IMG/VR virus record: IMGVR_UViG_3300021959_006010
Location: 62,001-126,000 of that record
DNA length: 64,000 bases
Reading direction: 5' to 3' (one strand)
Shown here: one piece after another, positions 3,241-62,569 of the stretch
Layout of the letters: every line of letters starts with the position of its first letter
Numbering within the stretch: position 1 is the stretch's first letter
The notes under the pieces: model-generated
The model's input: only the letters and a program-made list of their open reading frames with translations
The model's database searches: none
Told to the model about the DNA's origin: nothing
Program-made: the position numbers and the translations under genes

Positions 3241-3248
3241 TATTTATA
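3241..3248 (-). promoter_or_regulatory. T4-type late promoter motif TATAAATA
   Basis: Exact T4 late consensus 25 nt upstream of the desaturase, overlapping a sigma70 -10 box. Confidence 0.6.
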
Positions 3249-28342: not shown

Positions 28343-28977
28343 GTAGAAAATACTTTTTTATTGTCAAAAGCACGTTCCCATCCAAAGAACTGTGCTTTAT
28401 AATCCGAATGATCGTCTGAACTTAGATTTTCCCATTCGTCCTTACGTTGGTATAAACGCATTGCACCGTCATACCAATCAGTGTCGTCTATAATTTTTTC
28501 TAGACGTTCTTTTGCAGCATAGGCAGATTCTACATTGTCAAAATCTTGTTCTATGTGTATCACTTCCATTACAATGTCGTGTGTAACAAAATCCAAACTA
28601 AAATCAATACCCCATTTGGGTTTAATGTTTAGCAATTTTTGAAGTATTGGGCGATTTTTGCATACTTCTTCTATTTGCTCTCTTGCTTCTCCGGCAAACG
28701 CATAACGAGTTAATAGCATACAGTGATCTAGTACAAGCCCGTGTTCGCTTTGTTCTACGTCCGTGTACCATTCTTGCACCGGAGCAATATGATATTGTAT
28801 TTCTCTGTTGAGTTTAACACCGTTTGCTTCGTAGTGCAAATGTTCTAAAGGAGTTGGAACCTCGTAACCGTCCTTGTCAAAATCTTTAAATGGAAGTGTT
28901 TCGACTTGTAGTCGTGCTATTGGTTTGCGAAGAAATGGATCTGGATCGAACTTAGGGTATAAGTTCTGAAGTATCAT
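28339..28977 (-). CDS. hypothetical protein
   Basis: 212 aa globular ORF. Confidence 0.75.
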   Translation of the reverse strand: MILQNLYPKFDPDPFLRKPIARLQVETLPFKDFDKDGYEVPTPLEHLHYEANGVKLNREIQYHIAPVQEWYTDVEQSEHGLVLDHCMLLTRYAFAGEAREQIEEVCKNRPILQKLLNIKPKWGIDFSLDFVTHDIVMEVIHIEQDFDNVESAYAAKERLEKIIDDTDWYDGAMRLYQRKDEWENLSSDDHSDYKAQFFGWERAFDNKKVFST

Positions 28978-30230
28978 CCGATCTCTTTTGCTCCCATACG
29001 ATCTAATGCCATATCAATTTGAACAGCTAATTTAAAATCATCCGTTGTAAGGCCTTTTGTATCGTGTGTGTATACAACAAGCTCTACTTCGTTATAAAAG
29101 AACTTGATATCTGCAAAATGATCTAATTCAATCTGTGGTTTTTCGATAACCATTAAGAAACGTAGTACAGTGTTGTAATCGTCAAACGCTACTTTCTTAT
29201 ATAGATATTTTCCTTTACGTATTTCCCAATCTTTAGCATATTCTTTACGTAACGCTTCGGCGTCCATGCCATCAACTTTGGTATATGACTCGCCCATTAT
29301 TTTACCTTTGTGTTTTTCTTTTCGTGGTAAAACTTTTTTCTTATCTTTGTGTGCGCCCATTGCACCACTTTTGCGTAAATCTTGCATAGTTTGTGCATTT
29401 GGATCACGTGGTTTAATTTTTGGCTTATCTTTGTATGCTTCTAGTGCTTTTAATAAACTATCTTTAATAGTTCCGGTTCCCTTGGCAGCATCTTTTAGTG
29501 TAAATGGTTTTCCATTTACATCTGTTATTTGTTGTCTGCTGATAGCAAAATTTGCTCCTTTTAGAGTGAGCTTTATCTGCGGTCTTCCTTTACCATCTTT
29601 TTGATTTACTAACAAACCTATTACAGGTGCAGTTCTTTTCTGTCCTGTTGAATTAGTATAGGTAACGTTATCTCCTTTTTTAAGAACATAACCGTTGTCA
29701 CTAACAGGCCAATCTTCTTTTGGTTGAGCGTCTGGAGTTACTTTATCTGCTTGAGGTTTTTCCTTAGGTTCTTTTTTAGGAGTTTTTTCTTTTTTATCAA
29801 AGCTCATAGGAGCCAATGCATCAATTTTATTATATTTGTCAAAGCCTTGTCTAAACGCATCACCTGCTGTTGGATTTTCTTCAAGATCGTTGTCTATACT
29901 ATCTCCAACAAGTTTATCTTTTAGAGGATGTTCTGTACGCCCAGGTTCCGCAGTTGGCCAAGGATCTGATCCTTTTGCTTGACCACTAGAACCTGTTTTT
30001 TGTCGTTCGTCTAATCTTACACCAGCAAGTGCTGCAAAATCTGTTATGGAATAATCTTTATCCAAGCCTAAACTACCTTCGGTCACTTCTGCACTTTCTT
30101 GTAGATAATTTGTTGTAGGTGCTACATTATCTATAGGCTGTCCAGCTTGCGCTTTTAATTTTGCAAGGTCTTCTCTAGGATCACTTGGATCCAATGCAAA
30201 TAGTTTTTGTTGTAGTGCGTGATAATCCAT
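28974..30230 (-). CDS. modular protein with C-terminal pterin-4a-carbinolamine dehydratase (PCD/PhhB) domain
   Basis: Last about 100 aa: W.....YLYKKVAFDDY, DHFADI, YTHDTKGLTTDDFKLA; N-terminal part low-complexity. Confidence 0.7.
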   Translation of the reverse strand: MDYHALQQKLFALDPSDPREDLAKLKAQAGQPIDNVAPTTNYLQESAEVTEGSLGLDKDYSITDFAALAGVRLDERQKTGSSGQAKGSDPWPTAEPGRTEHPLKDKLVGDSIDNDLEENPTAGDAFRQGFDKYNKIDALAPMSFDKKEKTPKKEPKEKPQADKVTPDAQPKEDWPVSDNGYVLKKGDNVTYTNSTGQKRTAPVIGLLVNQKDGKGRPQIKLTLKGANFAISRQQITDVNGKPFTLKDAAKGTGTIKDSLLKALEAYKDKPKIKPRDPNAQTMQDLRKSGAMGAHKDKKKVLPRKEKHKGKIMGESYTKVDGMDAEALRKEYAKDWEIRKGKYLYKKVAFDDYNTVLRFLMVIEKPQIELDHFADIKFFYNEVELVVYTHDTKGLTTDDFKLAVQIDMALDRMGAKEIG

Positions 30231-30882: not shown

Positions 30883-31821
30883 TTATAGTGTATTTATCTT
30901 TTCCTTTGTACAAGTAATATCAAAATTACAATGACACCAATCCTTGTTACACAATATAGGCTCGTTTGGTAACTCTAATTTATCATCAAATATATTTCCG
31001 ATATTACCACCAACGCCGCACCAGCCTCTACTAATTTTACCGTCAAGGAATACAATAAGTTGTTCTATGCCAATATGACAATTCCATCCATTCCAGTTAT
31101 TCATTTTAGAATTAACTAGCTCGTTGGCTCCGTAATCAACATCTTTGTACGTCATTTTTCCTCTCAAATAAGGAAAACGTTTTGTTTTTATGACTTTATC
31201 TTTGATATTTTTTTGTTGATCTTTTATTAATTGATGCTGTTCGTCAGTATATGGATATAAGTCTCCACTTAAATCATATAACAACGGTTGCAACGATATT
31301 GTTAAATTACCTAAGTCTTTTATAGTATCTGCAACATCATAACAATAATCAAAATTCTTAGGATCCATCATAATATTTACATGGGTTCGAAGATCATTGT
31401 GCAGTATTTTAACTACATCTATAAAATGATCTTTGTTTGCATACTCATGATGGAAACTTAAATTAATTGAACTAAAATATTTTTTGTTAGCTTCCCACCA
31501 CCTTAATGATCTACTACCATTACTAATCAGTCCTACTTTAATATTGTTATCTGAACAAAGTTTACACAACTGATCAAAGTGTTTATAAAGCGTAATTTCT
31601 CCACCAGTAAATTCAAAGTAGAGCTTTTTATTAGGAAAAGATGTTTTTATTTTATTAACAAACCTTTCTACATAAGAAATGTCAGGCCACTTAGTTGATC
31701 CATCGTGTAAGATGTCAGGACAATAACTGCAATTAAAATTACAAGTGTTGCCTAAGCACCAATTTACGATAAACCAGTCTTTATGAGAAGGATCTGAATG
31801 TGTTAATGTTTGCATTAACAA
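30883..31821 (-). CDS. radical SAM protein with C-terminal SPASM/Twitch-like Cys cluster
   Basis: CNFNCSYC, FTGGE, ISNGSR, C.IG...GWC...C...C.C..D..C. Confidence 0.85.
   Translation of the reverse strand: MLMQTLTHSDPSHKDWFIVNWCLGNTCNFNCSYCPDILHDGSTKWPDISYVERFVNKIKTSFPNKKLYFEFTGGEITLYKHFDQLCKLCSDNNIKVGLISNGSRSLRWWEANKKYFSSINLSFHHEYANKDHFIDVVKILHNDLRTHVNIMMDPKNFDYCYDVADTIKDLGNLTISLQPLLYDLSGDLYPYTDEQHQLIKDQQKNIKDKVIKTKRFPYLRGKMTYKDVDYGANELVNSKMNNWNGWNCHIGIEQLIVFLDGKISRGWCGVGGNIGNIFDDKLELPNEPILCNKDWCHCNFDITCTKEKINTL
30891..30898 (-). promoter_or_regulatory. late promoter-like motif GATAAATA
   Basis: Recurrent motif, 30 nt upstream of the 30861 start. Confidence 0.5.
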
Positions 31822-31835
31822 TACTTATTTGTAGT

Positions 31836-32216
31836 TTATTTTTGACGTTTACTTTTGGATTTCTTTTTCTTAGTGCGTGTAACCATACCAGGTCCACCAT
31901 TGACAAAGCCGTTCCCACCACCCATACTAGAACCAATATCTCCAGCAACGGTTTCGTTTAGTCCTGCTTTATACCCGTCTTCATACTCGCTAGTGCGTGG
32001 ACCGTATGCATCACTAGCCTTAGGATCCATTTTACCTGTTTTACCATCAGCAAAACCTTTTTTCCAAATTGTGCTCTTATCAGCATGTGGATCATTTATA
32101 TCGTATGCTTTTCCTTTTGACTTTTGTACAGGCTTCGTTTTAGCAAACTTTGCTCTTAAATCAGCAGCAACGGATTTTTCCCAATCCCTACCTTCTAGTA
32201 AATCTCTAATTTTCAT
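31836..32216 (-). CDS. putative capsid-internal protein
   Basis: N-term MKIRDLLEG; internal LNET; basic tail. Confidence 0.6.
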   Translation of the reverse strand: MKIRDLLEGRDWEKSVAADLRAKFAKTKPVQKSKGKAYDINDPHADKSTIWKKGFADGKTGKMDPKASDAYGPRTSEYEDGYKAGLNETVAGDIGSSMGGGNGFVNGGPGMVTRTKKKKSKSKRQK

Positions 32217-32544
32217 CTGTTAATTTCCTTTGTTTATGGTGCGTACCAGACTTAACTCTACAAGTATTATTACATTCTCTAAAAGGTACATCAGACCAGG
32301 AGTTTTCGTATTCTTTAAAAATGCCTTTTTCTACTATTGTATTAACAGAAAACTTTGTTACATCATTAAAGTCGTTGTCAAACTTCTTTTCTTTAAAAAA
32401 TCTTTCTGTAAAACTACTATCTGTATTTAGTATTTGAGTTTCTTGATAGTCAAACGCTGACCAGCAACAATAAAACAATTTTTTATCTGCAGAAAGATAT
32501 ACACTATTTTCTTTTTTAGCAAAGCAATCTATTTTATCCGTCAT
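32206..32544 (-). CDS. stand-alone SPASM/Twitch-like Cys domain
   Basis: C......VYLSAD....CCW...ECNNTC; directly follows a radical SAM core. Confidence 0.6.
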   Translation of the reverse strand: MTDKIDCFAKKENSVYLSADKKLFYCCWSAFDYQETQILNTDSSFTERFFKEKKFDNDFNDVTKFSVNTIVEKGIFKEYENSWSDVPFRECNNTCRVKSGTHHKQRKLTDEN

Positions 32545-33187
32545 AATCTATAACCTTTGTAGCAGGATATATTGTATATAGTTTTTTATAATCTTTATCT
32601 AAAACATCTAAATGATCTTTCCAAAATCTGTTTGAAGATCTTGCTTTAAATTTTTTAAATCCTAATTCTTTTGCTAACATTTTACAGTCATCTACTTGGT
32701 GTTCATTATGGCGGAAAACATTCATAGTCCATATAGCAGTTCCGCCTTCGTTAATAAAACATTTAGCATTATTAATTATAACATCGAATCTAGTATTTCG
32801 TCTATATAAATGATGAGTGTCTTCTAGACCATCTATACCAAATTCAATTAAAACGTTATTAATTCCTAACCATTTCCAAAAATTAATATGTTGTGCTCCA
32901 CCGTTAGTATTAATGTGTACTTCTATATTTCTTTTTAAAAATTCGTTAATAAATTCTTTAGGATGAGTATGCTTAACTATGTCTCCATAATTTCCATTAA
33001 TTAAAACTTTTTTTAAGTTTTTGAAATACGGATCGTCAAGCGTCTTAGCTATGTCCTTTGCTGACCATTCAGTTATAGACAAACCTTCTTTTAAATTAGG
33101 ACTTGCTCCGCTGTGTCTCATACATTGGGGGCACCGAGCATTGCAATCAGTAGTCGGCTCAATGTGCAAACTTGTTGGTAAGGTCAT
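32534..33187 (-). CDS. radical SAM protein (core only)
   Basis: HIEPTTDCNARCPQC, GNYGD, INTNG, FGIDG; start re-called to MTLPTS. Confidence 0.85.
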   Translation of the reverse strand: MTLPTSLHIEPTTDCNARCPQCMRHSGASPNLKEGLSITEWSAKDIAKTLDDPYFKNLKKVLINGNYGDIVKHTHPKEFINEFLKRNIEVHINTNGGAQHINFWKWLGINNVLIEFGIDGLEDTHHLYRRNTRFDVIINNAKCFINEGGTAIWTMNVFRHNEHQVDDCKMLAKELGFKKFKARSSNRFWKDHLDVLDKDYKKLYTIYPATKVIDYDG

Positions 33188-33354
33188 TTTAAGTATTTTT
33201 GGTATGTTTTCCAATAATTCTGACGTTCATTTGTGCTTGCTCGTCGAGCTTCGTGTTCTTTTATTTTAGCAACATAATGACTTGTTTCTATGCCACTATT
33301 GTTCGGATATAGTTCTACTACTTTTTCTTCCGTCCCGACTTCATGTTTGCGCAC
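33184..33354 (-). CDS. small hypothetical protein (56 aa, GTG start, absent from track)
   Basis: Manual translation MRKHEVGTEEKVVELYPNNSG...NYWKTYQKYLK; stop overlaps the next ATG. Confidence 0.45.
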   Translation of the reverse strand: MRKHEVGTEEKVVELYPNNSGIETSHYVAKIKEHEARRASTNERQNYWKTYQKYLK

Positions 33355-34055
33355 CAATGATACATCCTCGCTTTCTCACCTGAGCTATTCTTGGCTCGTT
33401 TTCTTAAACTTGTAACACTACCATTGCAACTAGCACCTGCACGTTTTACACGCCCTGGTCTGCTTTTGCCTTTTTTCTTACCATCTGCAAAGTTTTCTAA
33501 CTGTGCAAATAAATCACTGCGTTTTTTAGTTGTTTCTTCTATACTATGTCCGCCCTCCATAAGAGCAAGTTCCATAGGAGTAAAACGTTCACTATAAGCT
33601 TTATCTGTTGCTGCTTTTGCCTTTTCAGCATCAGGATGCTTTGGATTAATAGTTACAACTTCGCCGTTGATTAATTCTGCTATATTTGCACTCTTACCTA
33701 TAGTATCTAACAATTGATGTAAGTCGTCATTAGGATCATAGTTACCGCTTTCGTAGCCTAGTTTGCCACGTACTTCTGTGCGATGCCCTGTTTCAGTATT
33801 TTTAATATGCAACACAAGCATTTTTTTATCTCTTTCTAGTTGTAACTTATAACCTTCAGTTAATCCTAGATTGAATAGTACGTTAGTTGACTTGCCTTTT
33901 ACCTTAGAACTTAGTGTAGGAGGCTTTCCGTCTTTGTCAACAGTGTTACCAAATTTTGCTGCTTGCTTTTTAATTTCGTTTGGTCCTACATCAGCTGTTG
34001 TATTAACACCTTTAACAATTCTTCCTACAGCTTCGTCTAGATCATAGATTTTCAT
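33318..34055 (-). CDS. modular putative capsid-internal protein
   Basis: N-term MKIYDLDEA; modules separated by LTEG and LMEG; basic C-terminal module with two Cys. Confidence 0.65.
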   Translation of the reverse strand: MKIYDLDEAVGRIVKGVNTTADVGPNEIKKQAAKFGNTVDKDGKPPTLSSKVKGKSTNVLFNLGLTEGYKLQLERDKKMLVLHIKNTETGHRTEVRGKLGYESGNYDPNDDLHQLLDTIGKSANIAELINGEVVTINPKHPDAEKAKAATDKAYSERFTPMELALMEGGHSIEETTKKRSDLFAQLENFADGKKKGKSRPGRVKRAGASCNGSVTSLRKRAKNSSGEKARMYHWCANMKSGRKKK

Positions 34056-34270
34056 TTTAGATCGTCCCTAAACTCTTCTACGTAGTAATCCATAGGTGTG
34101 TCTGATTTAAGTTCGAACCACTCTCCGTCTGCGTTTGTTCCGCTCAGTAACTTGGGTGTTTTCTTTTTAAAATCTTTTACAATAATACGACGATCCTTGC
34201 CACGATGTGTTACTTCTAACACGTACCAAGGGTTCCAACTTCTCCATATTCTTTTAAAAAACATTCTCAT
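34052..34270 (-). CDS. hypothetical protein
   Basis: 72 aa; ATGA coupling. Confidence 0.7.
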   Translation of the reverse strand: MRMFFKRIWRSWNPWYVLEVTHRGKDRRIIVKDFKKKTPKLLSGTNADGEWFELKSDTPMDYYVEEFRDDLK

Positions 34271-34389
34271 TTTTTATCTTCTTTACAGTTACATTTAGTA
34301 CATACGTCATTTACACATTTAGGACAATCTGGAGAATAACAATGACAATCGTGTCCACATGTTTTGCATTCTCTTTTTGATCCTATCAT
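34267..34389 (-). CDS. metallothionein-like Cys-rich peptide (40 aa, absent from track)
   Basis: MIGSKRECKTCGHDCHCYSPDCPKCVNDVCTKCNCKEDKK; 9 Cys, 2 His; ATGA overlap at both ends. Confidence 0.75.
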   Translation of the reverse strand: MIGSKRECKTCGHDCHCYSPDCPKCVNDVCTKCNCKEDKK

Positions 34390-34604
34390 TTTTTACGCCC
34401 TCGAAATCCATTGTTACCTGTTAGTCCTGGTAAACTGAACCATAGTTTAAACCACTCATCTGTACCAGGTTGTATATTTTTCTCACGTTCGATTTTCTTT
34501 TTTTCAGTACCTGATATTGATAAATTTTCTTCTACTTGGTATAACTTGTAACCTGTGTACTTGTTACGTATACCTGCTAAGTGTTGGAGATCTTCGATTT
34601 CCAT
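34386..34604 (-). CDS. hypothetical protein
   Basis: 72 aa; MEIEDLQHLAGI. Confidence 0.7.
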   Translation of the reverse strand: MEIEDLQHLAGIRNKYTGYKLYQVEENLSISGTEKKKIEREKNIQPGTDEWFKLWFSLPGLTGNNGFRGRKK

Positions 34605-35473
34605 GCGTCTTTATCTCCTTTAGCTGCTGCTTTGCGTCTTGCTGCAATCTTGTCTTGTATGCTAGGTTCAAACTTTTCTTTTTTCTTTTTAACTGTAGCT
34701 TTCTTAGAAGATTTACCAGCAGCATATCCCCAAATTTCATCTACTTCTTTTTTCTTCTTTTTCTTTTCGTCTGAACTATGACCAAATGTTTTATGTACAA
34801 GTTTGTCTAGTTTTCTGTGGAATTCATCTTCTTCGTCTGGTGACGCATCTTCGCCGACTGGTGCTTCAGGATCACCTAGTGCTTGATTTAACAATTTTAC
34901 AGCAACAGGAGCACCATTACCGTACATAAGTTTAGCAGCCTTTAGTTTATCTTCGTCTGACATTTCAGGCCAAGTAGCTCTTAGCTCACTTGCACTTTTA
35001 ATCTGCATACCTGAAAAGTCAAAGTTAATAGTAGGACCATATGCCATATAGCCCATTTCATCTGCTGTGTTTAGATCTTTACCTGTGTAACTACGCAAGT
35101 ATCCTGGCTCGCCATTCTTTTTAGTTTGATCTGGAAGCGGCTGTTCAGCTTTATCCTTCTGGCTTCGAACAAATACTAGTGCTGTGTCTCCGTCTAATAG
35201 ATCTGCGTACTCTCTGTTGTTAAAAGGTGACTTAACCTGCATAAAGTTACTTTCAGGAACACCTGCCATTGCTGCTAGTTTCTTTTTAACTTCAAACGGA
35301 AACGGTCTTGCTTTAGTATCGTTAGTTGCTGCAACATAAACATTCTTTTGACCGAATGTTTTTACTGCCCAGTCATATAAACTTTTATGTCCAGGATGGA
35401 ATGGATGGAAACCGCCTGGCATTACAGCTACAATACGTCTTGCTTTCCCTTCAAATAACTCTCTTAATAACAT
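34577..35473 (-). CDS. HxGH nucleotidyltransferase (cytidylyltransferase-like) with capsid-targeting-like N-terminus
   Basis: MLLRELFEG; PGGFHPFHPGH; RPFPFEVK; SASELR. Confidence 0.78.
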   Translation of the reverse strand: MLLRELFEGKARRIVAVMPGGFHPFHPGHKSLYDWAVKTFGQKNVYVAATNDTKARPFPFEVKKKLAAMAGVPESNFMQVKSPFNNREYADLLDGDTALVFVRSQKDKAEQPLPDQTKKNGEPGYLRSYTGKDLNTADEMGYMAYGPTINFDFSGMQIKSASELRATWPEMSDEDKLKAAKLMYGNGAPVAVKLLNQALGDPEAPVGEDASPDEEDEFHRKLDKLVHKTFGHSSDEKKKKKKEVDEIWGYAAGKSSKKATVKKKKEKFEPSIQDKIAARRKAAAKGDKDAWKSKISNT

Positions 35474-35476
35474 AAC

Positions 35477-36565
35477 TTAGTTCGGTTGCCAACGTGATCT
35501 TGGTACTAGTTTAGTTTTAGTATCAAGAGCAACGTAGCCTTCGCCTCCCTTTTCACCTTGTGTTGATTGTTTAACATCAGTATCAGCATCGTCAAGTTGA
35601 TTGATAATATGATCTTTAACAGTCATTACTTTTTTAACAAGACCAAAAATAGCAGGAAGTGCATTAGGCATTGTTTCGTTCATAGCTGCTAATTTTGCTT
35701 GTTGATTTTTGCTAACTTTTGATGTTTCTAGCCAATCAAAGAACCCGTTTTCAATGTCTCCTAGCTTTTGTACTTTACTCATTTGATTCATATATGTGTA
35801 AATAATCCCAGGAACATTACTTAATCCAGCTTGTCCTTCTAAGAACTTATCCATTATTCCAGCATGTCTTTTTGCCATACTTCTAATTTCTTCAACTTCG
35901 CTTGTATCTACACTAGGTTGATGTGTTACATAAGTTTGTCCTAGAACAACAGCACCTTCTGAATTAAGTTCATTTACATCTGAAATAGGTTTTCCAGCTT
36001 TACCCCCAAATTCGTTAATTTTTGTGTGGACAACAACACCAACTTTACTACCTGCTATGCGTTTACCAAGTTCGCTATTTTTGCTCACTGTGTATGTAAC
36101 TTTATTAGGGGTAAATTCTATACTTCCGTCTTTTATTTCGTATGGCTTTCCAGGATGATATAATATATCACCGTAAATATAACCACGGAAACCTTCCGGA
36201 GTAGCTTCTTTCATAACATCAAATATGCCAGCCATTTCGTTTGCAAAACGCTCACGCCAGTCTTCGCCTTTTCCTGTGCTTAAAATAAACTTTTTAAGAT
36301 CTTCTGCACTAGTTGACTTATTTCTTCCCCAGCCGTTTTTACCTACAAGTACAAAATCGCCATTCTCGTCACGACCATAATACATAGTAGGATAACCGTC
36401 CCATTTAATAGCAATGTCTGAACTGTCAGAACCCATTTTTTCTAAGGTATCAGCTGCCTTCATTGCACCTTTAGAACCTTCAATAAAGACAAGGTCTTCT
36501 AAATGTTGATATTCTCTACCTACTTTTGCTTCTGTTAAAATTGGACGGAATTCTGAAAATCTCAT
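35477..36565 (-). CDS. conserved phage protein with a ligase-like KxDG motif
   Basis: MRFSEFRPILTEAK; HLEDL, IKWDGYP, YGDILY, GEGYV, KLV. Confidence 0.6.
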   Translation of the reverse strand: MRFSEFRPILTEAKVGREYQHLEDLVFIEGSKGAMKAADTLEKMGSDSSDIAIKWDGYPTMYYGRDENGDFVLVGKNGWGRNKSTSAEDLKKFILSTGKGEDWRERFANEMAGIFDVMKEATPEGFRGYIYGDILYHPGKPYEIKDGSIEFTPNKVTYTVSKNSELGKRIAGSKVGVVVHTKINEFGGKAGKPISDVNELNSEGAVVLGQTYVTHQPSVDTSEVEEIRSMAKRHAGIMDKFLEGQAGLSNVPGIIYTYMNQMSKVQKLGDIENGFFDWLETSKVSKNQQAKLAAMNETMPNALPAIFGLVKKVMTVKDHIINQLDDADTDVKQSTQGEKGGEGYVALDTKTKLVPRSRWQPN

Positions 36566-36900
36566 TAATAAGTTCCCTTACAAACTTCTTCCAGTTCTTC
36601 TTCTTTTAAACGTTCGATAATATTATCAATATCGCTAGGAGGAAACATAACGCCTGCTGGCTTGGGCATATTGTATTTTTTACAATATTGTTTTGCTGCA
36701 TCAACAACTACTGGACGCATTGTTTCTGCAAAGCTAAATTCTTCTTTATTTCTATAACAATCGCTCATTTTACTTAACGCTGGAAACAAACTTTTGCGAT
36801 AAATCACCGGATCGTTCTTCATAAAAACCATTAAATCCTCTGCAGGATTAAATGGTAAAGAATCATCGATTGGTTGTGTAAACTCTACAATTTTTACCAT
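36565..36900 (-). CDS. hypothetical protein
   Basis: Start re-called to MVKIVEF; 111 aa. Confidence 0.7.
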   Translation of the reverse strand: MVKIVEFTQPIDDSLPFNPAEDLMVFMKNDPVIYRKSLFPALSKMSDCYRNKEEFSFAETMRPVVVDAAKQYCKKYNMPKPAGVMFPPSDIDNIIERLKEEELEEVCKGTY

Positions 36901-37460
36901 TTTCTGCAACTCCAGTAACGTGCTTTAGTGCGTGGACCAGGATTGTCACAGTTGTGTCTAGCACGGAAACTTCTTCTACGTGCTGGATTACTCTTTTTAA
37001 TCTTCATATTAGGATCACCAAAGTTAACTTTCTTAACGTTTTTAGTCTTAGGATCCTTAACATACACTTTAAACTTTTTAACATCGCCACGCATTGGCTT
37101 GCCTAGTTTAACTTTACGACCTTGATATTCCGCTTCGTCCATTTCGTCATCTTCGTTGAACCACATAACACCGTATTCTAAGAAGAAATCATCGCCGTCG
37201 TATGTTTCTTCTGTAATATCTTCACCTAGTTCAGACGAAATTTCAATGTCAAAGTCATCGTAACCTTGTTCAAACATATAGTCTGCTAAACGGTTAGCAT
37301 ATTCATCTGATTCTTCTTCGCTTAGTTGACGAGGAAGTGCAATTTCGTATACTGTAGCACCTTGTTCGGTTTCGTAAACTTCTTGTTCTGCAAAAATACT
37401 CTCGTCTAGTAGTTGAGCATTTTCTTGTTTTTCCATTACTATTCTTACAAAGTGTTCCAT
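36894..37460 (-). CDS. acidic N-terminus plus basic C-terminal module (KKVNFG...SFRARHNC...YWSCRKW)
   Basis: Basic module resembles one common in aquatic phages and follows a MDEA site. Confidence 0.75.
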   Translation of the reverse strand: MEHFVRIVMEKQENAQLLDESIFAEQEVYETEQGATVYEIALPRQLSEEESDEYANRLADYMFEQGYDDFDIEISSELGEDITEETYDGDDFFLEYGVMWFNEDDEMDEAEYQGRKVKLGKPMRGDVKKFKVYVKDPKTKNVKKVNFGDPNMKIKKSNPARRRSFRARHNCDNPGPRTKARYWSCRKW

Positions 37461-37471
37461 AGCGTTACCCT

Positions 37472-37816
37472 TTAATGATTTAAAATTACTGAATTAATTG
37501 TGCCTTCTGTAAACTCTATTACAGTTCTTACCCATACATAGTTTCCAGTAAAATTTGCAATTTTACTTGACGTTTCAGTTGTGGCTGTATAGTCATGCAC
37601 TGTAAACCAATCTGCTTCAGCAGGATCGATTGCAAGTGTTCCTTGAATTTTTATAGTTCCTGAAAAACTATCATAAGAATACTGTACGGTGTGCAGACCA
37701 TCGCTACGTCCATAGTATCCGTCACCTCTGTACTTGTCTCCTGTTACAGTTTGTGTCGGATCTCCAAGTACATCGTATGTTTGTGTTGTTAATATTGTTT
37801 CACTATTTACTGGCAT
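37472..37816 (-). CDS. hypothetical beta-sandwich protein (possibly structural)
   Basis: 114 aa, Thr/Gly-rich beta strands; late motif immediately upstream. Confidence 0.7.
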   Translation of the reverse strand: MPVNSETILTTQTYDVLGDPTQTVTGDKYRGDGYYGRSDGLHTVQYSYDSFSGTIKIQGTLAIDPAEADWFTVHDYTATTETSSKIANFTGNYVWVRTVIEFTEGTINSVILNH

Positions 37817-37820
37817 ACAG

Positions 37821-38519
37821 TTATTTATCTGTATTACCTTTATAGACTAATCGTTCGACTTTACCGATACTATTTTTAGATAACATTTCTATTAATAGCA
37901 TAAGTTTTGAATCTCGAAGATAAAAATAACAATTACACCATTGATAATTTCTTAAATTTTCGAGTGCCTTTTCTGTTATTCTTGATTTATCTTTATTGTT
38001 TTCCAACCAATCAGCAAGTTCAGGATTTTTTCCTGATTTAATATGCACTCTATATTCGTAAGGTAACGGCTCATTTAAAATGTAAACAGATGCATCATCT
38101 AAGAACGAAGAAATATCTTGTTCTCTCGGCTTATGTACTTCTCTAACATAGGGTTTAATACTTGGATCATTTAGTATGCTGTCTAAATCTTCTTCGTTTT
38201 CTAAATAAATGCTTAGTGCATAATAATCAATTCGTAATCTGTAAGAATCTAACTCTTCAAATTTTTCTACTAATTTTTTAGCATAGAAATAGTCATCAGT
38301 AGAGTATTCTTCTACTCTATTTCTATAACCATTTAGTTGCAAAGGATTATTTGACTTGTATAAAAAGTCTAATTCTTCTAAACACTCATACGCAAACTCC
38401 AACTGCGAGTATCTACCGTAACGTGTTGAGAAAATTTTATTAATAGGATTCCTCAAATTAATTTTATACATAAATTTGTTATACCAAAGCTTTCGAGTAG
38501 TATATTTTTTAACCATCAT
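37821..38519 (-). CDS. hypothetical protein
   Basis: 232 aa; AT-rich; overlaps the clpA end. Confidence 0.7.
   Translation of the reverse strand: MMVKKYTTRKLWYNKFMYKINLRNPINKIFSTRYGRYSQLEFAYECLEELDFLYKSNNPLQLNGYRNRVEEYSTDDYFYAKKLVEKFEELDSYRLRIDYYALSIYLENEEDLDSILNDPSIKPYVREVHKPREQDISSFLDDASVYILNEPLPYEYRVHIKSGKNPELADWLENNKDKSRITEKALENLRNYQWCNCYFYLRDSKLMLLIEMLSKNSIGKVERLVYKGNTDK
37822..37829 (-). promoter_or_regulatory. late promoter-like motif GATAAATA
   Basis: Heads the putative head-cargo block. Confidence 0.5.
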
Positions 38520-40767
38520 ATGGTACCTCTAAAGCAGTTTTAGACTTGTAAGACTCTAATACAAATTTATCTTCTTCTGCATTATAATTAATAGTTACAG
38601 TTCCACCATTTTTAAGATCTCCAAAAAGTAATGATCTTGAAAGAGGACGTTTAATTTCGTTATCGATTACACGTTGTAATGGTCTTGCACCCATTTTAGG
38701 ATCGAATCCTTTTTCTACTAGTGCATCTAATGTTTCGTCAGTAACTTCGATATCGACACCTTTTTCTTTAACCATATTTTTAAGTTCAAGCAAGAATTTT
38801 CCAACAATTTTCATCATTACTTCTTTGCTTAAACGTGCAAAAGTAATAATGCCATCTAGACGATTACGGAATTCTGGACTAAAGAAACGTTTAAGTTCTG
38901 TATCTTCGTAGTCGTAATCATTGTCTGTGCTAAATCCAATGGTGTTTTTCTCTGCGGCTTTTGCACCTAGGTTTGTTGTAAGAATAAGTGTGCAGTTACG
39001 AGCATCTGCTTCCCTCCCGTCAGAGCCTGTTACCTTACCATTGTCCATAAGTTGCAATAAGATTTGAGAAACATCTGGGTGTGCCTTTTCAATCTCGTCA
39101 AGCAACAATACACAGTTAGGATGTTCTTGTAACTTAGTAATAAGGATGCCAGCACTATCTTCAAAACCAACATATCCTGGTGGAGAACCAATCAACTTAG
39201 CAACACTATGCTTTTCTTGATACTCACTCATATCAAGACGAACAAGTTTAACACCTAGTTGTTCAGACAATTGTTTAGCAGTTTCTGTTTTACCTGTACC
39301 AGTTGGACCCATAAAGATAAAACTACCAATAGGCTTATCATCTGGTTTAAGACCTGCTTGGCTTACAAGTATTTTATCAACAATTGATTCAATTGCTTCG
39401 TCTTGTCCGAATACTGTTCCTTTAAGGTTCTTTTCAAGATTTATAAGATTGTCGGTTTCTTTTTGACTGATAGTTTCTACTGGAATATTAACCATCTTCG
39501 CGAGTTCAAATTCAATTTCTTCTCTACTAATACGTTTTTCTTCTACGTTTTCTTTTAGATTAAAGCGAGAACACGCTACGTCAATCAAGTCAATTGCTTT
39601 ATCTGGTAGTTTCTTGTCAGTCTGATACTTAACACTTAGTTTAACGGCTGCTTCGATAGCACTTTCTGTAATTTCAGTTGCGTGGAATTCTTCGTAATAT
39701 TTTTTAATTCCACGTAAAATGTCTTTTGTTACTTCAACACTTGGTTCGTCTACACCTACACGTTGGAATCGACGCATTAGAGCACGATCTTTTTCAAAAT
39801 ACTTGCGATATTCTTCCCAGGTAGTAGAAGCAACTACCTTTATATCTCCTTTACTAAGAGCAGGTTTTAGCATATTAGCAAGATCGTTTGAACTGTCTTT
39901 TGATCCAGCACCCGCACCATTCATCATATGTGCTTCGTCAACAAACATAATTGTTTTGCCTTTTTTAGTTAGTGCTTGAATAACTAATTTTAGACGTTCT
40001 TCAAAATCACCACGATATTTTGAACCAGCAAGCATGCCGCCAATGTCAAGATTATACACTTCATAATCTTTTAGGAACTCAGGCACGTTTCCGTTTACAA
40101 TTTTCCAAGCAAGACCTTCTGCAATAGCAGTTTTACCTACACCAGGATCACCAACAAGAATAACATTGTTTTTACTGCGTCGACCTAGTGCAAGAGAAAT
40201 GCTTTCAATTTCCTCTTCACGGCCGATTACAGGATCAATTTTTCCTTTGCTAGCACGATTATTAAGGTTGTCAGTAAATGCTCTTAATGCTTTTTGGGCT
40301 GCACCGCTAATTTCTTCCTCTTCGTAGTCGTCTTCCATTTCTGCATTTATGTAATTAGAGAATTTTTGTTTTTCAATTCCTGCTTTCTCTAACCAATAAC
40401 AACCGATACTTTTCTTTTCACCAAGTATTGCAATAAGAACGTCGGCTAACTCAATTTGCTGACGTCCATGGAACAATACTTGTGTAAATGCTCGATTTAA
40501 GCAACGTTCAACTGTTTGAGTTTTCTTGGGTTTAAAATCTTCAGATTCAATTTTGATATCATCGCAATTATTACGAAGATGATTTTCTAAGTTCTTTTTA
40601 ATAAAAAGAGGATCAGATCCATAACCTTCAATAATTTTTTCGAGATTCTCGTCACATAGCATTGCAAATAGCAAGTGCTCTAGTGTCAAGTATTCGTGCT
40701 TTAATTTTTGTGCATCCTTGATTGCTTTTTCGAACACTAATTGTAGTTCTTTACTAGGTTCAACCAT
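38509..40767 (-). CDS. clpA: ATP-dependent Clp protease ATP-binding subunit ClpA
   Basis: Clp N domain (HEYLTLEHLL), GDPGVGKT, GPTGTGKT, DMSEY.E.HSVAKLIGSPPGYVG, GARPL; 752 aa with no ClpB M-domain. Confidence 0.92.
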   Translation of the reverse strand: MVEPSKELQLVFEKAIKDAQKLKHEYLTLEHLLFAMLCDENLEKIIEGYGSDPLFIKKNLENHLRNNCDDIKIESEDFKPKKTQTVERCLNRAFTQVLFHGRQQIELADVLIAILGEKKSIGCYWLEKAGIEKQKFSNYINAEMEDDYEEEEISGAAQKALRAFTDNLNNRASKGKIDPVIGREEEIESISLALGRRSKNNVILVGDPGVGKTAIAEGLAWKIVNGNVPEFLKDYEVYNLDIGGMLAGSKYRGDFEERLKLVIQALTKKGKTIMFVDEAHMMNGAGAGSKDSSNDLANMLKPALSKGDIKVVASTTWEEYRKYFEKDRALMRRFQRVGVDEPSVEVTKDILRGIKKYYEEFHATEITESAIEAAVKLSVKYQTDKKLPDKAIDLIDVACSRFNLKENVEEKRISREEIEFELAKMVNIPVETISQKETDNLINLEKNLKGTVFGQDEAIESIVDKILVSQAGLKPDDKPIGSFIFMGPTGTGKTETAKQLSEQLGVKLVRLDMSEYQEKHSVAKLIGSPPGYVGFEDSAGILITKLQEHPNCVLLLDEIEKAHPDVSQILLQLMDNGKVTGSDGREADARNCTLILTTNLGAKAAEKNTIGFSTDNDYDYEDTELKRFFSPEFRNRLDGIITFARLSKEVMMKIVGKFLLELKNMVKEKGVDIEVTDETLDALVEKGFDPKMGARPLQRVIDNEIKRPLSRSLLFGDLKNGGTVTINYNAEEDKFVLESYKSKTALEVPYDG

Positions 40768-41266
40768 TCACTTTCCTCTTTTTTAATTTATTTTGTTTTT
40801 TCAACGCTCGGTCCAGTTTAAGTTTACTTACACGATCGGTGTATTCAATACCATTAAGGTGATCAAACTCGTGTAAGAAACAACGTGCATCAATATCATA
40901 TAATTCTATTATACATTCTTTAGCATTTATGTCAAGATATTTGGCAGTAATATATTTAGGTCTTCTTACGTGCAGAAATAATTCGGGATGGCTCAAACAT
41001 CCTTCTATCATTAGCTCAGTTTCTTTGCTAGCAGAAGTTACTTCAGGATTGATAATAACTAAAGGAGTTTTATCTTCTAACAATATAGGTCTCATTACAA
41101 AAATTTGAGCATCAAGTGCAACTTGATTTGCACTCATTCCTAGTCCACTTAGAGTTTGCATAAGTGCTACCATCTTCTCACCTATATCTTTAGCATCTAA
41201 AGCATCAAAGTCAAATGGCTTTACTACCTTCTGTAACCATTCATTCGGTGATTTAACTAATTCCAT
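40760..41266 (-). CDS. def: peptide deformylase
   Basis: GMSANQ, EGCLS, HEFDH. Confidence 0.93.
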   Translation of the reverse strand: MELVKSPNEWLQKVVKPFDFDALDAKDIGEKMVALMQTLSGLGMSANQVALDAQIFVMRPILLEDKTPLVIINPEVTSASKETELMIEGCLSHPELFLHVRRPKYITAKYLDINAKECIIELYDIDARCFLHEFDHLNGIEYTDRVSKLKLDRALKKQNKLKKRKVNG

Positions 41267-42062
41267 CTCTTATATTCCTAATCTTATCTAACAGGGCATC
41301 GTCTTTTATTTTTGGAACAATAACCCTTACTTTAACAAAAATATTTCCTCTTCGACTATCATTAAGATACGGTAAACCATATCCAGCAATGCTTAAAACA
41401 GTATCTGGATTTGTTCCTGCAGGTATTTTAATATTTAATCTTCTTGAATCAAGTGTTTCAATTTCAGTCTCTATACCTAGTATAGCATCAAATGCAGAAA
41501 TGTCTATCGTTGTATGCAAATTTTGTCCATCTCTGCGCCATTTTTTTAATGGAGTAGTAATAAACTTTACAATTAGATCTCCTCTAGACACTCTTGGATT
41601 TCCGTCATCGCCTAAACCTCTATACCTAATCATTTGGTTATCGCCAACACCTCGAGGAACTTCGATTTCTACTCTTTCATTTTTTCCACTTTGCAACCTA
41701 TACTCAAATATTAATAATCGTCCATATAAAACATCCCTCAATTCGATACTAGCTGATACGTGTATGTCTCTATTTTTTGGCTGAGGTCTTCCTCGTGCAT
41801 TTCTAAACATTGAGTTAAAAATGTCATCAAAGTTTCCGTAGGCATTTGTAAAATCCGAAGAGTTCATATTAACTTGCGGATTGTCGTATGCTTGTCTTTT
41901 TTGTGGATCTTTTAGTGTATCGTATGCTTCGTTAATTTCTTTAAACTTCTTCTCATCACCGCCTCTATCAGGATGGTTTTGCATAGCAAGTTTACGATAT
42001 GCGCTCTTTAGTTCTTTATCGGAAGCATTTTTTCCTACACCTAAAATAGAATAATAGTCCAT
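41253..42062 (-). CDS. dnaJ: class B J-domain chaperone (DnaJ/CbpA-like, no Zn finger)
   Basis: DYYSILGV, HPDRGGD, FKEINEAY, G/F region, C-terminal GDL/GN domains. Confidence 0.9.
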   Translation of the reverse strand: MDYYSILGVGKNASDKELKSAYRKLAMQNHPDRGGDEKKFKEINEAYDTLKDPQKRQAYDNPQVNMNSSDFTNAYGNFDDIFNSMFRNARGRPQPKNRDIHVSASIELRDVLYGRLLIFEYRLQSGKNERVEIEVPRGVGDNQMIRYRGLGDDGNPRVSRGDLIVKFITTPLKKWRRDGQNLHTTIDISAFDAILGIETEIETLDSRRLNIKIPAGTNPDTVLSIAGYGLPYLNDSRRGNIFVKVRVIVPKIKDDALLDKIRNIRDGIS

Positions 42063-42585: not shown

Positions 42586-43344
42586 TTAACCCTCCATTTT
42601 TTCTAAGTTAGCAATATAATTACCAATACTGTGATCACTAAAGTTATCGATGCCGCCTTGTTTCAAGCCCATCGCAAAACCACGCCAGCGATCTTTCATT
42701 CTTTGCCATCCTGACATTTTACGTACTTCGCCATAAGCATTCATATAATGCTCTGTACCGTGATGTGTATAACCCATAATTTTCAAAGGCACTCTTGTAA
42801 CAACATCGTTGTTGTTTACCCATCTGTGATGCTCTACTCCTAGGTGTACGCAATATTTTTTCCATCCTACTCTTGGAGAACCGTATGTATATAATTCTAC
42901 AGGATCAGGAACTTTTGTGTTGTACAGACAACGGCTTGCCATAATAGTTGCCATTGCTGCACCTAAGCTATGTCCGCAAAACCATAAGTCTTGTTTTGGT
43001 TGTTTTGACATAAGATCTGCCATTACCATAGGCCATAACTCGTCTACCTCTGCTTTAAAGCCTTGATGCACACGGCTTATGGTCTCTGCTATTACTGGTA
43101 ATGCTTTTAAATCTGCTGCAATATCATTAAATTGTGTTGGTTGTGTTCCACGGCAAGCAATAACCATATCATCCTTACTTGCAAATCTGTATGCTTGAGC
43201 ACCGTGTTTGTCATAAAATTCAACCTCTGTAAATCCCAAAGGTTTAACAAGTTTTTTTACTTCTTTTTGATCATCTTTATATGCGATAGAAGCTAACTTA
43301 GCAAATAGTAAACTTCTGTCTTTGAAACTTAGATCTTTAATCAT
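42586..43344 (-). CDS. lipase class 3 (alpha/beta hydrolase)
   Basis: IACRGT, VHQGF, GHSLG, DVVTRVP, DHS triad. Confidence 0.9.
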   Translation of the reverse strand: MIKDLSFKDRSLLFAKLASIAYKDDQKEVKKLVKPLGFTEVEFYDKHGAQAYRFASKDDMVIACRGTQPTQFNDIAADLKALPVIAETISRVHQGFKAEVDELWPMVMADLMSKQPKQDLWFCGHSLGAAMATIMASRCLYNTKVPDPVELYTYGSPRVGWKKYCVHLGVEHHRWVNNNDVVTRVPLKIMGYTHHGTEHYMNAYGEVRKMSGWQRMKDRWRGFAMGLKQGGIDNFSDHSIGNYIANLEKMEG

Positions 43345-43644: not shown

Positions 43645-43652
43645 TATTTATA
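43645..43652 (-). promoter_or_regulatory. T4-type late promoter motif TATAAATA
   Basis: Exact consensus upstream of the 43634 gene. Confidence 0.55.
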
Positions 43653-59800: not shown

Positions 59801-60111
59801 GCTAACAGTCCTTCGTTTGTAATCCATTGCGGATCATCTGGACCTACTACTAAGATATTAAATGTTATATCTTCAAATGTATAATCATTTGTTGCTCTAA
59901 TTACAAATTTGTAATTTGTATCTCTTGGAACTTCAAATGGAGTACCTACAAGCTTTAATCCTTCGATTCTCATTCCAGGAGGCATGTTTCCTGCTATTTT
60001 TTGTAATTGAAGAGATTCATCGTAATCAATAGGTAATTGTATCTCGGTTGTTACTTTTTCTTGTAATGTTGCTATAACACTATTATTGTTTGCTTTCCAG
60101 AGAGATGCCAT
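56806..60111 (-). CDS. large structural protein with Ig-like (He_PIG-type) repeats, baseplate/tail
   Basis: Repeats G.(L/M)P.G(L/M).(L/I)...G.(I/L)VG.P about 4 times (GNMPPGM, GILPPGL, RLPEGL, GTMPPGM). Confidence 0.7.
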   Translation of the reverse strand: MASLWKANNNSVIATLQEKVTTEIQLPIDYDESLQLQKIAGNMPPGMRIEGLKLVGTPFEVPRDTNYKFVIRATNDYTFEDITFNILVVGPDDPQWITNEGLLAAINSRLFVLDSEIIDYQLVAIDSDTSAGDELEYFIASGDGILPPGLQLTSDGRIVGVVEPLLALDKRAGSGGYDTNPYGEFPMDFAFYSDNGFGTFFYDTETYDFSFKTQSLKKLNRRYRFAVSVSDGDSISRREFEMYVVGDDFLRADNSVMKVGTGVFTADITHIRTPVWITPANLGYKRANNYVTLYLDIVDDYTLSGNVIYTEDETNDDGTPSRLPEGLSLDSLNGEIVGRIPYQPAVTQEYKFTIRATRFTGDTDYAEITGTVLEDTFAGVNNFKIGKLPIGTADGIDDVAALRGQILELKGNFYIINSVDNTQEEYDIVYLTDTLRPNFFIQTYDIVPSGVDFFYINSVDYQSRELLQNTKFNYSDTEVYTIESIFPYVEWDIESDFADLEINWDVVTEIENITDDDGDPIVETFAEKIKRVLEQLTGFSAEVYEATTNRIRFITAKTAETRRSRIETIFVSPGDAAIYTVTEDAIERVKLDNVLTRSFQQGQTISWALKEKDSFVKSISTDANEDINNPYTSKTFTLNILGEVDSTIQFTTNSNLGTIQANSVSTIRVDATTTIPNAPLVYEVTSGTMPPGMYLSYDGELIGKPSQFETETTLGLTRFDGGNTLFDTSTTSIDRTFRFTIKAQDRFQYSAVEQEFSLTVLDLEETLYSNLYISPLIEPSMRDEYRVFVSDPDIFPPETIYRPNDPEFGLQTSIKMLAFAGVETKDISEYVSAISKNHKKKRFRFGEIKTAFAKKPGTNEIVYEVVYVEIIDPAQPKQGEAAKQFKIKGGKHITADSVSYAVKDDVTKYRTGTPQIEIQGRSSTDSVDLDNERLTVSTRDGDITQSVDNDDLDVILRDSTEVNVSTTPTDSEPWRFRPETNTTKADSNAIKVNQTRDNVKYISNLQNMQDRIRDIGAVQTDFLPLWMRTPQEGSIGALAYVPAVPLAYCKPGKSGEVLLNIQNKDFDLKKIDFTADRYIIDSTLGKSEEQYIVFANYSFNV

Positions 60112-60134
60112 GCGTTAGTTTCCTTTTACAATAA

Positions 60135-60142
60135 TATTTATC
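60135..60142 (-). promoter_or_regulatory. late promoter-like motif GATAAATA
   Basis: Recurrent intergenic motif. Confidence 0.55.
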
Positions 60143-60145
60143 GTA

Positions 60146-60877: not shown

Positions 60878-60900
60878 TTAATATCTCCGTTTATTGTATA

Positions 60901-60908
60901 TATTTATG
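60901..60908 (-). promoter_or_regulatory. late promoter-like motif CATAAATA
   Basis: Variant motif upstream of the 60877 gene. Confidence 0.45.
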
Positions 60909-62568: not shown

Positions 62569-62569
62569 A

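Follow-up and report, generated by a model that had tools for sequence, protein, structure and literature searches.

Several described systems come close to the locus that we report here, three minus-strand genes (S, A and B) in a 64,000-nucleotide stretch of viral DNA, hereafter the window. The window covers bases 62001-126000 of the 275-kb IMG/VR record IMGVR_UViG_3300021959_006010, which is estimated to be 77% complete. In the kinetoplastid editosome the Pol-beta-type enzyme RET2, a terminal uridylyltransferase (TUTase), passes its product to the Rnl2-like ligase REL2. In bacteriophage T4, gp21 sites in gp23 and in ipII and ipIII are cleaved. Among phages, nucleotidyltransferases (NTases) of the RlaP family are predicted to work beside phage RNA ligases (PMC7824862), and RlaP adds one or two nucleoside monophosphates (NMPs) to damaged RNA 3' ends in vitro (bioRxiv 10.64898/2025.12.29.696909). 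The cytidylyltransferase gp154 of cyanophage S-CREM2 was detected in CsCl-purified virions (three unique peptides, 11.2% coverage), and according to its authors such enzymes recur in cyanophage virion proteomes (PMC10665884). The theme of an RNA ligase plus an NTase, the cyanophage 'cytidyltransferase' and its detection in virions are therefore already known.

In the literature searched we did not find an assignment of the protein family DUF6267, to which A belongs, to the ligases, nor a description of S, A and B as a cassette with its fusions, nor a rule for T4-type leaders on such proteins. We propose that a conserved cassette S-(X)-A-B, with A and B as its core and X a further NTase, repairs broken nucleic-acid ends, probably those of RNA, and that the leader-bearing enzymes are packed into the phage head. 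To this proposal, in which we infer the activities, the substrate, the cleavage and the injection, we give a probability of about 0.5.

In what follows, coordinates without a prefix are window positions, G000 is the record itself, and G001, L004, L009, L036 and L045 are other records. Gene A (35477-36565, minus strand) encodes a DUF6267 protein of 362 amino acids (aa), predicted to be a divergent, ligase-like covalent nucleotidyltransferase. Gene B (34577-35473, minus) encodes a 298-aa HxGH nucleotidyltransferase with a Lys-rich tail, and gene S (36565-36909, minus), directly upstream of A, a protein of 111-114 aa. An initial annotation, made from the letters without database searches, had described a KxDG ligase-like protein next to an HxGH nucleotidyltransferase; both open reading frames (ORFs) are indeed present on the minus strand, with the strings that it quoted in the order given. 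The stop codon of S shares bases with the start codon of A (TAATG), and only 3 nt separate the stop of A from the start of B, which argues that S-A-B is one translationally coupled unit. It sits in a long, dense run of co-oriented genes, downstream of a ClpA-like gene.

A scores 88.9 bits against Pfam DUF6267 (PF19782, cut-off 27) over residues 20-357, and the cyanophage protein Syn1_160 scores 427 bits against the same model. No PHROG function and no NCBIfam match was found for A, and DUF6267 is not named anywhere in the literature searched. The family, mostly from marine viromes, comprises 1636 clusters in a word search, on contigs of up to 357 kb, and 991 representatives at E<=0.001 in an exhaustive profile search. 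When 79 diverse members were aligned (27% mean column identity), H21, D24, K54, D56, G57, G64, K317, E342, G343 and K352 proved invariant, with E23, W55, R65, G128, D133, P153, N154, Y158, H180, V354 and R356 at least 90% conserved. The strings IKWDGYP (53-59), YGDILY (131-136), GEGYV (341-345) and KLV (352-354) were located in the protein, and we take its residues to correspond to covalent NTase motifs I (KWDG), an Ia-like GR, III (D133), IIIa (Y158), IV (EGYV) and V (KLVxR). Motif I, K54-W-D-G57 (36395-36406, minus), would provide the nucleotidylated lysine; conservation also marks motifs IV and V, G-E342-G343-Y-V ... K350-T-K352-L-V-x-R356 (35498-35545, minus).

The AlphaFold2 model of A, built from the 79-sequence alignment, has a predicted local distance difference test (pLDDT) of 94.1 and a predicted template modelling score (pTM) of 0.90, with residues 1-14 disordered. 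Motif I stands at the end of strand 51-53, D133 on strand 128-137, P153, N154 and Y158 on strand 156-161, E342-G343 ahead of strand 344-346 and K352 on strand 351-353; motifs III, IIIa, IV and V follow one another in order on beta strands of a single NTase domain. The chain ends about 10 residues past motif V with no oligonucleotide-binding (OB) domain. Instead, ~105 residues between motifs IIIa and IV (residues ~221-326; 35588-35905, minus) form an atypical inserted bundle of helices, which holds the invariant K317. A fold search across 48,161 chains returned ligases or capping enzymes in all of its top 24 rows, RNA ligases leading; the closest folds are the nick-sealing RNA ligases Rnl2, Rnl5, REL1 and Trl1, with REL1 second-best. 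Foldseek against the PDB, a check suggested with the initial annotation, gave nothing at E<0.001, its weak rows including T4 Rnl2, a tRNA ligase, an archaeal RNA ligase and DNA ligases III and IV.

The ligase- or capping-like character first suggested for A is borne out by the conserved motifs and by a modelled fold of that kind, and we predict that A represents a divergent, previously uncharacterised family of the covalent nucleotidyltransferase superfamily, which it resembles at the level of fold. Set beside the nick-sealing RNA ligases (T4 Rnl2, Naegleria NgrRnl/Rnl5, T. brucei REL1 and the ligase domain of fungal Trl1), A is alike in fold but shows no detectable sequence similarity. It further differs in the helical bundle, in an extra conserved segment (H21/E23/D24) before motif I, and in a motif V with one invariant Lys only. 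By sequence A is not a member of the Rnl1/Rnl2-type RNA ligases or of the DNA ligases: it matches neither Pfam DNA_ligase_A_M nor DNA_ligase_aden, and Pfam RNA_ligase (PF09414) has no match anywhere in the genome at E<=1.

The lack of an OB domain, the helical insertion and the ranking of folds favour an RNA-ligase-like enzyme, with DNA ligases nearly tied. The same ranking bears on whether A could instead be a capping-type guanylyltransferase that moves GMP, or another NMP, onto 5' di- or triphosphate RNA ends. Capping enzymes do occur in those top rows, yet they stand below some eighteen ligases; A has neither an OB domain nor motif VI, and none of the cassettes showed a triphosphatase or methyltransferase as a partner. 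We consider a capping role very improbable. The idea of A as the replicative DNA ligase of the phage was rejected: the genome already encodes a canonical ATP-dependent DNA ligase (PF01068) as a separate gene (genome positions 153968-154537), and A is therefore not needed for replication. LigA was not found in this genome.

Judged by its motifs, B is a member of the HxGH superfamily that stands outside the defined enzyme families. It passes the Pfam CTP_transf_like cut-off narrowly (23 bits against 21), by sequence it matches an archaeal PPAT in the PDB (E 0.005), and its best fold matches are NMNAT/NaMNAT and PPAT, with a Rossmann-like fold. In the (H/T)xGH signature PGGFHPFHPGH (residues 19-29; 35387-35419, minus) G20, P24, G28 and H29 are invariant, which agrees with the assignment made from the letters; relatives read TIGH, TVGH or HKGH at this position. 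The second signature of the superfamily, the ISxTxxR-like SASELR (residues 160-165; 34979-34996, minus), has S160, A161 and E163 at least 90% conserved and becomes ISSASMLR or LSSASTLR in distant partners. Both motifs and the Rossmann-like fold are shared with the HxGH adenylyltransferases (NadM/archaeal NMNAT, NadD and PPAT) and with the cyanophage 'cytidyltransferase', whereas an insertion at residues 105-160, the Lys-rich modular tail and an N-terminal leader set B apart from the NMNAT and PPAT types. The B of the window, of HPGH type, is only ~20% identical to the TIGH type of its relatives.

The variable C-terminal tail of B (34580-34828, minus) holds 26 Lys or Arg in 83 residues and is preceded by VDE/I (here and below a slash marks the candidate cleavage point). 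Such tails are modular and are shuffled among homologues. In some, including P0142, P0172, P0184, P0200 and P0201, the C-terminal extension contains Sigma70 region 4 (PF04545, PF08281), which would join a nucleotidyltransferase to a promoter-binding module. A 245-aa protein encoded at 33318-34055 (minus) takes part in this exchange. Its C-terminal module, GYKLQLERD ... KMYHWCANMKSGRKKK, is fused to the end of a B-type NTase in relatives (L004:5083-6210, L009:5083-6207 and P0239), and in relatives with the fused module its N-terminal part (GRIVKGVNTT...) is a separate gene of 101 aa.

The fold matches of B suggest another function for the pair, in small-molecule metabolism. B would rebuild NAD+ as an NMNAT, or dephospho-CoA as a PPAT, and A would adenylylate a small phospho-compound or make dinucleoside polyphosphates, against NAD-depleting or nucleotide-signalling defences. 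The motifs GxFxPxHxGH ... SASELR resemble those of NadM and archaeal NMNAT, and ligases can form products of the diadenosine tetraphosphate (Ap4A) type. The cyanophage homologue has moreover been termed an NMNAT homologue (PMC10665884). However, B stays under every NCBIfam equivalog cut-off for NMNAT, NaMNAT and PPAT (best 11-19 bits, cut-offs 103-397), and three more HxGH enzymes are encoded in the genome, among them an NMNAT-like one (GRWQPWHDGH ... ISATKIR). Recurrent fusion with a Pol-beta NTase and a ligase-fold enzyme also fits polymer ends better. RNA repair and NAD rebuilding had both been offered in the initial annotation; end repair is the one we favour, and NAD rebuilding is weakened because no NAMPT, which would supply NMN, was found in the 275 kb of the record. 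Small-molecule metabolism is, in our estimate, quite unlikely to be the function of the pair.

The pairing of A with B is not due to chance: they constitute a true module that is widely conserved and frequently fused. In the T4-like cyanophages Syn1 and P-TIM40 the DUF6267 gene is followed by the 'cytidyltransferase' gene, which in C48C1 lies one gene further on. Among IMG/VR relatives whose A is 66-78% identical, 13 of 20 full loci have an NTase of the HPGH, TIGH or TVGH type directly after A. Adjacency persists in homologues that are only ~29-35% identical, as in L036 (S-A-B), and in the 137-kb contig L045, where stops and starts overlap, the order is ClpA, S, X, A, B. Fusion is common: of the best 150 DUF6267 representatives, 34 also contain X and at least 18 an HxGH domain, arranged in one of three orders (X-A-B, B-X-A and A-B), and a 'Cytidylyltransferase-like/DUF6267' cluster with 78 members is present in the ESM Atlas. 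The fusion P0269 has a HAD phosphatase-like domain in addition, and Pfam gave nothing usable for the unexplained parts of ten long fusion proteins. A complex prediction for A(15-362) with B(9-212) scored 0.07, which speaks neither for nor against binding. A module had been anticipated from the sequence, and the conserved, often fused A-B pair agrees with this; its description as a two-enzyme unit is incomplete, because X and S belong to it as well. These two partners, the leaderless versions in other phages and the occurrence of the B family in many phages without A go beyond the earlier description.

By eye, a 639-aa 'cytidylyltransferase like protein' of Microcystis phage Mel-JY01 (L052:3926-5845, P0393) may be a very divergent B-A fusion. 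It has an HxGH-like N-terminal domain (GRFQPMGIHH ... SGTNIR) followed by HPFDDL, EKLDG and EGIVF..KVYKL, in the order and spacing of the A motifs; hhalign of this protein with the A1 profile was silent.

X is a protein of 217-286 aa with a Pol-beta NTase signature (hG[GS] ... [DE]x[DE] and a third carboxylate), in which G49, G52, S66, D68, D70, Q134 and D136 are invariant (n=22). Its nearest named ESM Atlas cluster is PF01909 (score 0.93) and, among clusters with a common Pfam family, 'DNA polymerase beta palm' comes third-nearest by features (score 0.83). X has no PHROG match and no Pfam match even at E<=1; by its signature it is a Pol-beta-type NTase, but not RlaP (PF10127). In this genome X lies outside the window (G000:206452-207267). 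No homologue of X was found in the Syn1 genome, and a comparison of X with Syn1_159 was also negative. S homologues, recognised by a DDLxxFMxNDxxxYRK motif, precede A in L036, in L045 and in the IMG/VR relatives; S has no Pfam or PHROG family, and its matches in the ESM Atlas are to virus clusters only.

As in the phage and bacterial systems that combine RlaP with an RNA ligase (PMC7824862), a Pol-beta-superfamily NTase is genomically linked to a ligase-fold enzyme, here often by fusion. In contrast to them, X has no Pfam match, the ligase is DUF6267 rather than Rnl1/Rnl2, an HxGH NTase and S are added, and no kinase or phosphoesterase is regularly present. RET2 and REL2 are alike in pairing a terminal transferase with a ligase, though theirs is a multiprotein complex of eukaryotes directed by guide RNA (gRNA), and we treat the likeness as an analogy only.

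The neighbours of X and A in fold space also admit a module that acts on DNA. X would then be a minimal Pol X-like gap filler and A a sealer of DNA nicks or ends, and the incoming genome would be repaired or circularised, or nuclease damage mended. DNA ligases come within ~1 Z unit of RNA ligases in the fold search of A, the polymerase beta palm is near X, and the Lys/Arg-rich tails on B and its neighbours are proposed to bind DNA; packaged proteins, if packaged, would lie against DNA. On the other side, RNA ligases are the best fold matches of A, the genome has its own canonical DNA ligase, and A lacks an OB domain and motif VI, both of which, to our knowledge, all DNA ligases have. The known phage precedent for a Pol-beta NTase beside a ligase is moreover RNA repair (PMC7824862). 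A DNA substrate seems to us unlikely.

We turn to the leaders of A and B, which have the form M[KR]xx[DE][LF]...[LIV]xE/[AGS], that is, the form of T4 gp21 cleavage sites. The leader of A, residues 1-12 (36530-36565, minus), reads MRFSEFRPILTE/A followed by AKVGR and resembles a capsid-targeting sequence (CTS) with an LxE/A end (ILTE/A). That of B, MLLRELFE/G followed by GKARR (35450-35473, minus), has R4 and E8 invariant and L6 at least 90% conserved, and is kept internally in the fusion P0290. Of the 352 proteins predicted in the genome, 17 begin with M[KRLQ]-h-x-[DEQN]-h, where internal Met contexts would lead one to expect ~1.8. Eight of these 17 also have [LIVMF]xE[AGS] within 22 residues (6% of other proteins do), and four of the eight cluster at 31.8-36.6 kb of the window. 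The CTS-like leaders that had been read from the letters are real by these counts, by the disorder of residues 1-14 in the model of A and by their T4 site form.

A comparison of homologues points the same way. Of 79 N-terminal A homologues, 38 have the leader; in the remainder the protein begins at the conserved GRxxQHxEDL itself, so the leader appears to be detachable. The motif [LIVMF]xE[AGS] occurs in 49 of 66 N-terminal leaders of A and, within the 18 residues before internal A domains of fusions, in 42 of 48 cases, compared with 5.7% of background windows. This enrichment of ~13-15-fold is large, although its p-values are inflated because the sequences are related. The T4 record gives MKTYQEFIAE/A for ipII and ipIII and ...SFLTE65/A66 for gp23; in sequence, the leaders match the T4 CTS and the gp21-site form.

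Beside T4 IPI, IPII and IPIII and the gp21-processed head proteins, the leaders are of the same short kind, with an MK..[QE]F start and an [LI]xE/A end, and basic tails are shared as well. The cargo differs, being enzymes of 300-360 aa rather than small basic proteins, as judged from the genes. The acidic/hydrophobic pair stands one residue off its position in the T4 leaders, and the cleavage-site form is also found here between domains of fusion proteins. A T4-type protease is encoded by a close relative: on contig G001, whose A is 70% identical and whose A and B carry the same leaders, there are genes for Peptidase_S77 (T4-type prohead protease, 87 bits), for a scaffold like gp22 and for a gp23-like capsid protein that contains YLSE/SATAG.

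S-CREM2 gp154 starts MKNFSSFLTE/ADEK and shares 35% identity (E 6e-23) with the B of relative L004, which is of TIGH type. In other cyanophages, B of P-TIM40 starts MRFLDFIKE/A and A of C48C1 starts MMLDFKNFITE/Q. Two hypothetical proteins encoded beside the S-CREM2 cytidylyltransferase, gp155 and gp156, are in its virion proteome too (PMC10665884, Table 3). The latter (L055:5013-5726) has a ...VIVTGGNANYNYT stretch that might be part of another small nucleotidyltransferase. Taken together with the leader pattern, the detection of gp154 in virions and the head genes of G001 suggest that A and B are probably packed in the virion in this lineage, and would then be cleaved and injected.

The leaders could also mean something else. 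A and B may act only in the infected cytoplasm, as early or middle products, the leader serving as a linker, a translation-start context, a docking helix or a handle for the ClpA-like unfoldase. Many homologues, including those of cyanophage Syn1 and of the L036 and L045 operons, have no leader on A or B, the cyanophage pair sits among genes of replication and nucleotide metabolism, and adjacency to ClpA is conserved. The 275 kb of the record yielded no prohead protease: searches for T4 gp20-gp24 by BLASTP and phmmer, with Pfam S77 and Gp23 and with PHROG 207 and 138, gave no gp21-, gp23- or gp20-like gene, which is uninformative, since the controls were silent as well and the record is incomplete. 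The authors of the S-CREM2 proteome also caution about carry-over in CsCl purification (PMC10665884). Yet the leader ends in the exact T4 gp21 site form, enriched before A domains at internal junctions too, and it is dispensable for the fold of A; the close relative's contig has the set of protease, scaffold and capsid genes, and the one homologue detected in virions bears a leader. A purely cytoplasmic role is, on this evidence, possible but the less probable account of the leaders.

The polyvalent injected phage proteins of Iyer et al. 2017 (cited in PMC7824862) are alike in their variable fusions of enzymatic domains (NTases, SodC, pterin-4a-carbinolamine dehydratase (PCD) and sigma-r4), in low-complexity linkers and in a proposed co-delivery with DNA. 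The proteins described here are small and mostly single-domain, however, and as far as the leader pattern tells they are targeted by a T4-type leader and not by a MuF-like or other packaging domain.

End repair by head-packed enzymes, our preferred reading, would proceed as follows. In this jumbo-phage lineage A, B and several of their neighbours bear a bipartite N-terminal leader, which we read as a capsid-targeting propeptide of the T4 type that a gp21-like prohead protease would cut; on this reading the enzymes would travel inside the head and be delivered to the host along with the DNA. X would add back missing nucleotides at a 3'-OH end, as RlaP does beside RNA ligases. A would self-adenylylate on Lys54 and seal 3'-OH/5'-phosphate breaks via Lys54-AMP. 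For B, the least certain step, we envisage an adenylyl or cytidylyl transfer by which an adenylylated dinucleotide such as NAD+ may be made or regenerated, or a terminal phosphate activated. Cyanophage and freshwater versions without a leader would have to be expressed first in order to act.

Several points weigh against this proposal, beside the missing head genes and the carry-over caution given above. No sequence link joins A to the ligases: HMMER with A and the A1 profile against the PDB yielded noise only, and hhalign of the A1 profile with T4 Rnl2 gave a probability of 0.1%. The cassette includes no kinase and, as a rule, no phosphoesterase, and would by itself suit 3'-OH/5'-phosphate breaks; the 2',3'-cyclic-phosphate/5'-OH breaks typical of tRNA would for this reason not be healable by the cassette alone. 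The structure model of B has low confidence, the B of the window is only weakly similar to the virion-detected S-CREM2 gp154, and we know of no role for B in any repair pathway. The B family is found in 564 phage records and A in 72, from which it follows that B can work without A. DUF6267 is also joined to unrelated domains, such as Cu/Zn superoxide dismutase in a 65-member virus cluster of the ESM Atlas, so the fusions may partly reflect co-delivery and not one pathway.

A more far-reaching version can be formulated, which we think doubtful. Marine jumbo phages and some cyanophages would use a T4-type capsid-targeting system to load a ready-made repair machine of three NTases (Pol-beta NTase, DUF6267 ligase and HxGH adenylyltransferase) into the head and eject it with the DNA, so that tRNA, mRNA or the incoming genome, where nucleases have damaged it, is mended before phage genes are expressed. 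The machine would sometimes be a polyprotein cut at LxE/[AG] by the prohead protease, and the HxGH enzyme would carry out an undescribed repair step, such as terminal phosphate activation or recharging of the ligase cofactor.

These predictions are of practical use. DUF6267 is abundant, and placing it in the ligase superfamily gives concrete and cheap assays; its link in a trio with a Pol-beta NTase and with the widespread cyanophage 'cytidyltransferase' seen in virions likewise points to assays. If the leaders direct packaging, the T4 internal-protein principle would extend to catalytic repair enzymes, and M[KR]xx[DE][LF]...[LIV]xE/[AGS] would become a rule for predicting ejected proteins in uncultured T4-related phages. 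It would also bear on how phages survive nuclease-based defences at entry.

Further leader-bearing proteins are encoded in the genome. The 245-aa protein mentioned above has a full leader, MKIYDLDE/A, and a basic tail, as has a 126-aa protein at 31836-32216 (minus; MKIRDLLE/G). X lies in a second cluster of leader-bearing genes (G000:C1:202263-207517, L034), among small basic proteins that begin MKINEVIVE/A, MRASEFEIEE/G, MLLREFF..., MKINEIV... and MKLNELI.... A 414-aa protein (G000:177208-178452) starts MRFREFKLYHQPTVLTE/G and has no Pfam family.

Upstream of the cassette stands a ClpA-like AAA+ protein (38509-40767, minus; by Pfam), which we give for context only. It is part of a chaperone or protein-processing block directly upstream (38509-42062, minus) that comprises the ClpA-like protein (752 aa), a peptide deformylase-like protein (168 aa) and a DnaJ-like protein (269 aa). 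In the distant 137-kb contig L045 a ClpA gene (L045:1-1927) is likewise placed directly ahead of S-X-A-B. Phage ClpA has been speculated to aid the loading of proteins into heads (Iyer et al., PMC7824862).

Between this block and S lies a gene for a 188-aa acidic protein (36894-37460, minus) with a basic, Cys-containing tail, NPGPRTKARYWSCRKW, which matches phrog_7595 and, weakly, DUF5754. About 240 bases within it (36895-37134) show 69.5% DNA similarity to the Pelagibacter phages Kolga and Aegir, and within the 3.5-kb query 34000-37500 this is the only part with DNA-level similarity to cultured phages. At 30883-33214 (minus), a Cys-rich 112-aa ORF and the leader-bearing 126-aa protein lie between two radical-SAM genes (312 and 226 aa); together these may form a peptide- or cofactor-modifying set. 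A 418-aa protein (28974-30230, minus) carries a pterin-4a-carbinolamine dehydratase domain (residues 325-406) behind ~320 charged, low-complexity residues, and a segment of this linker reappears ahead of the A domain in P0294.

The T4 late-promoter octamer TATAAATA occurs at 2 sites in the window against ~8 expected. Both copies (3241-3248 and 43645-43652, minus) are immediately upstream of gene starts. With only two such sites and none close to the cassette, they carry no information on its timing. ARAGORN reports ten tRNA genes and a tmRNA-like (transfer-messenger RNA) gene, permuted and with the tag ANSNFKPEVFANFDEVAIAA, in the genome (G000:C1:157737-159245, 190771-191164 and 224553-224799), none of them inside the window.

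Nearly all genes of the window are on the minus strand. The DNA polymerase and clamp loader of the record are of T4 type (PHROG 262 and 168), and the nearest polymerases are those of the jumbo phages Sinorhizobium phage Phosso, Agrobacterium phage Atu_ph07, Vibrio phage 2.275.O and E. coli phage PBECO4. In a search of sequencing runs, this phage turned up in DNA runs only, from estuarine and marine metagenomes. The window also has a class-3 lipase-like gene (42586-43344) and a probable tail or baseplate block (56806-63370, minus). This block encodes a 1101-aa Ig-domain protein, a 554-aa subtilase (Peptidase_S8) and a 243-aa protein like the N-terminal part of T4 gp9/10, a baseplate match that is weak (22.3 bits against a cut-off of 25).

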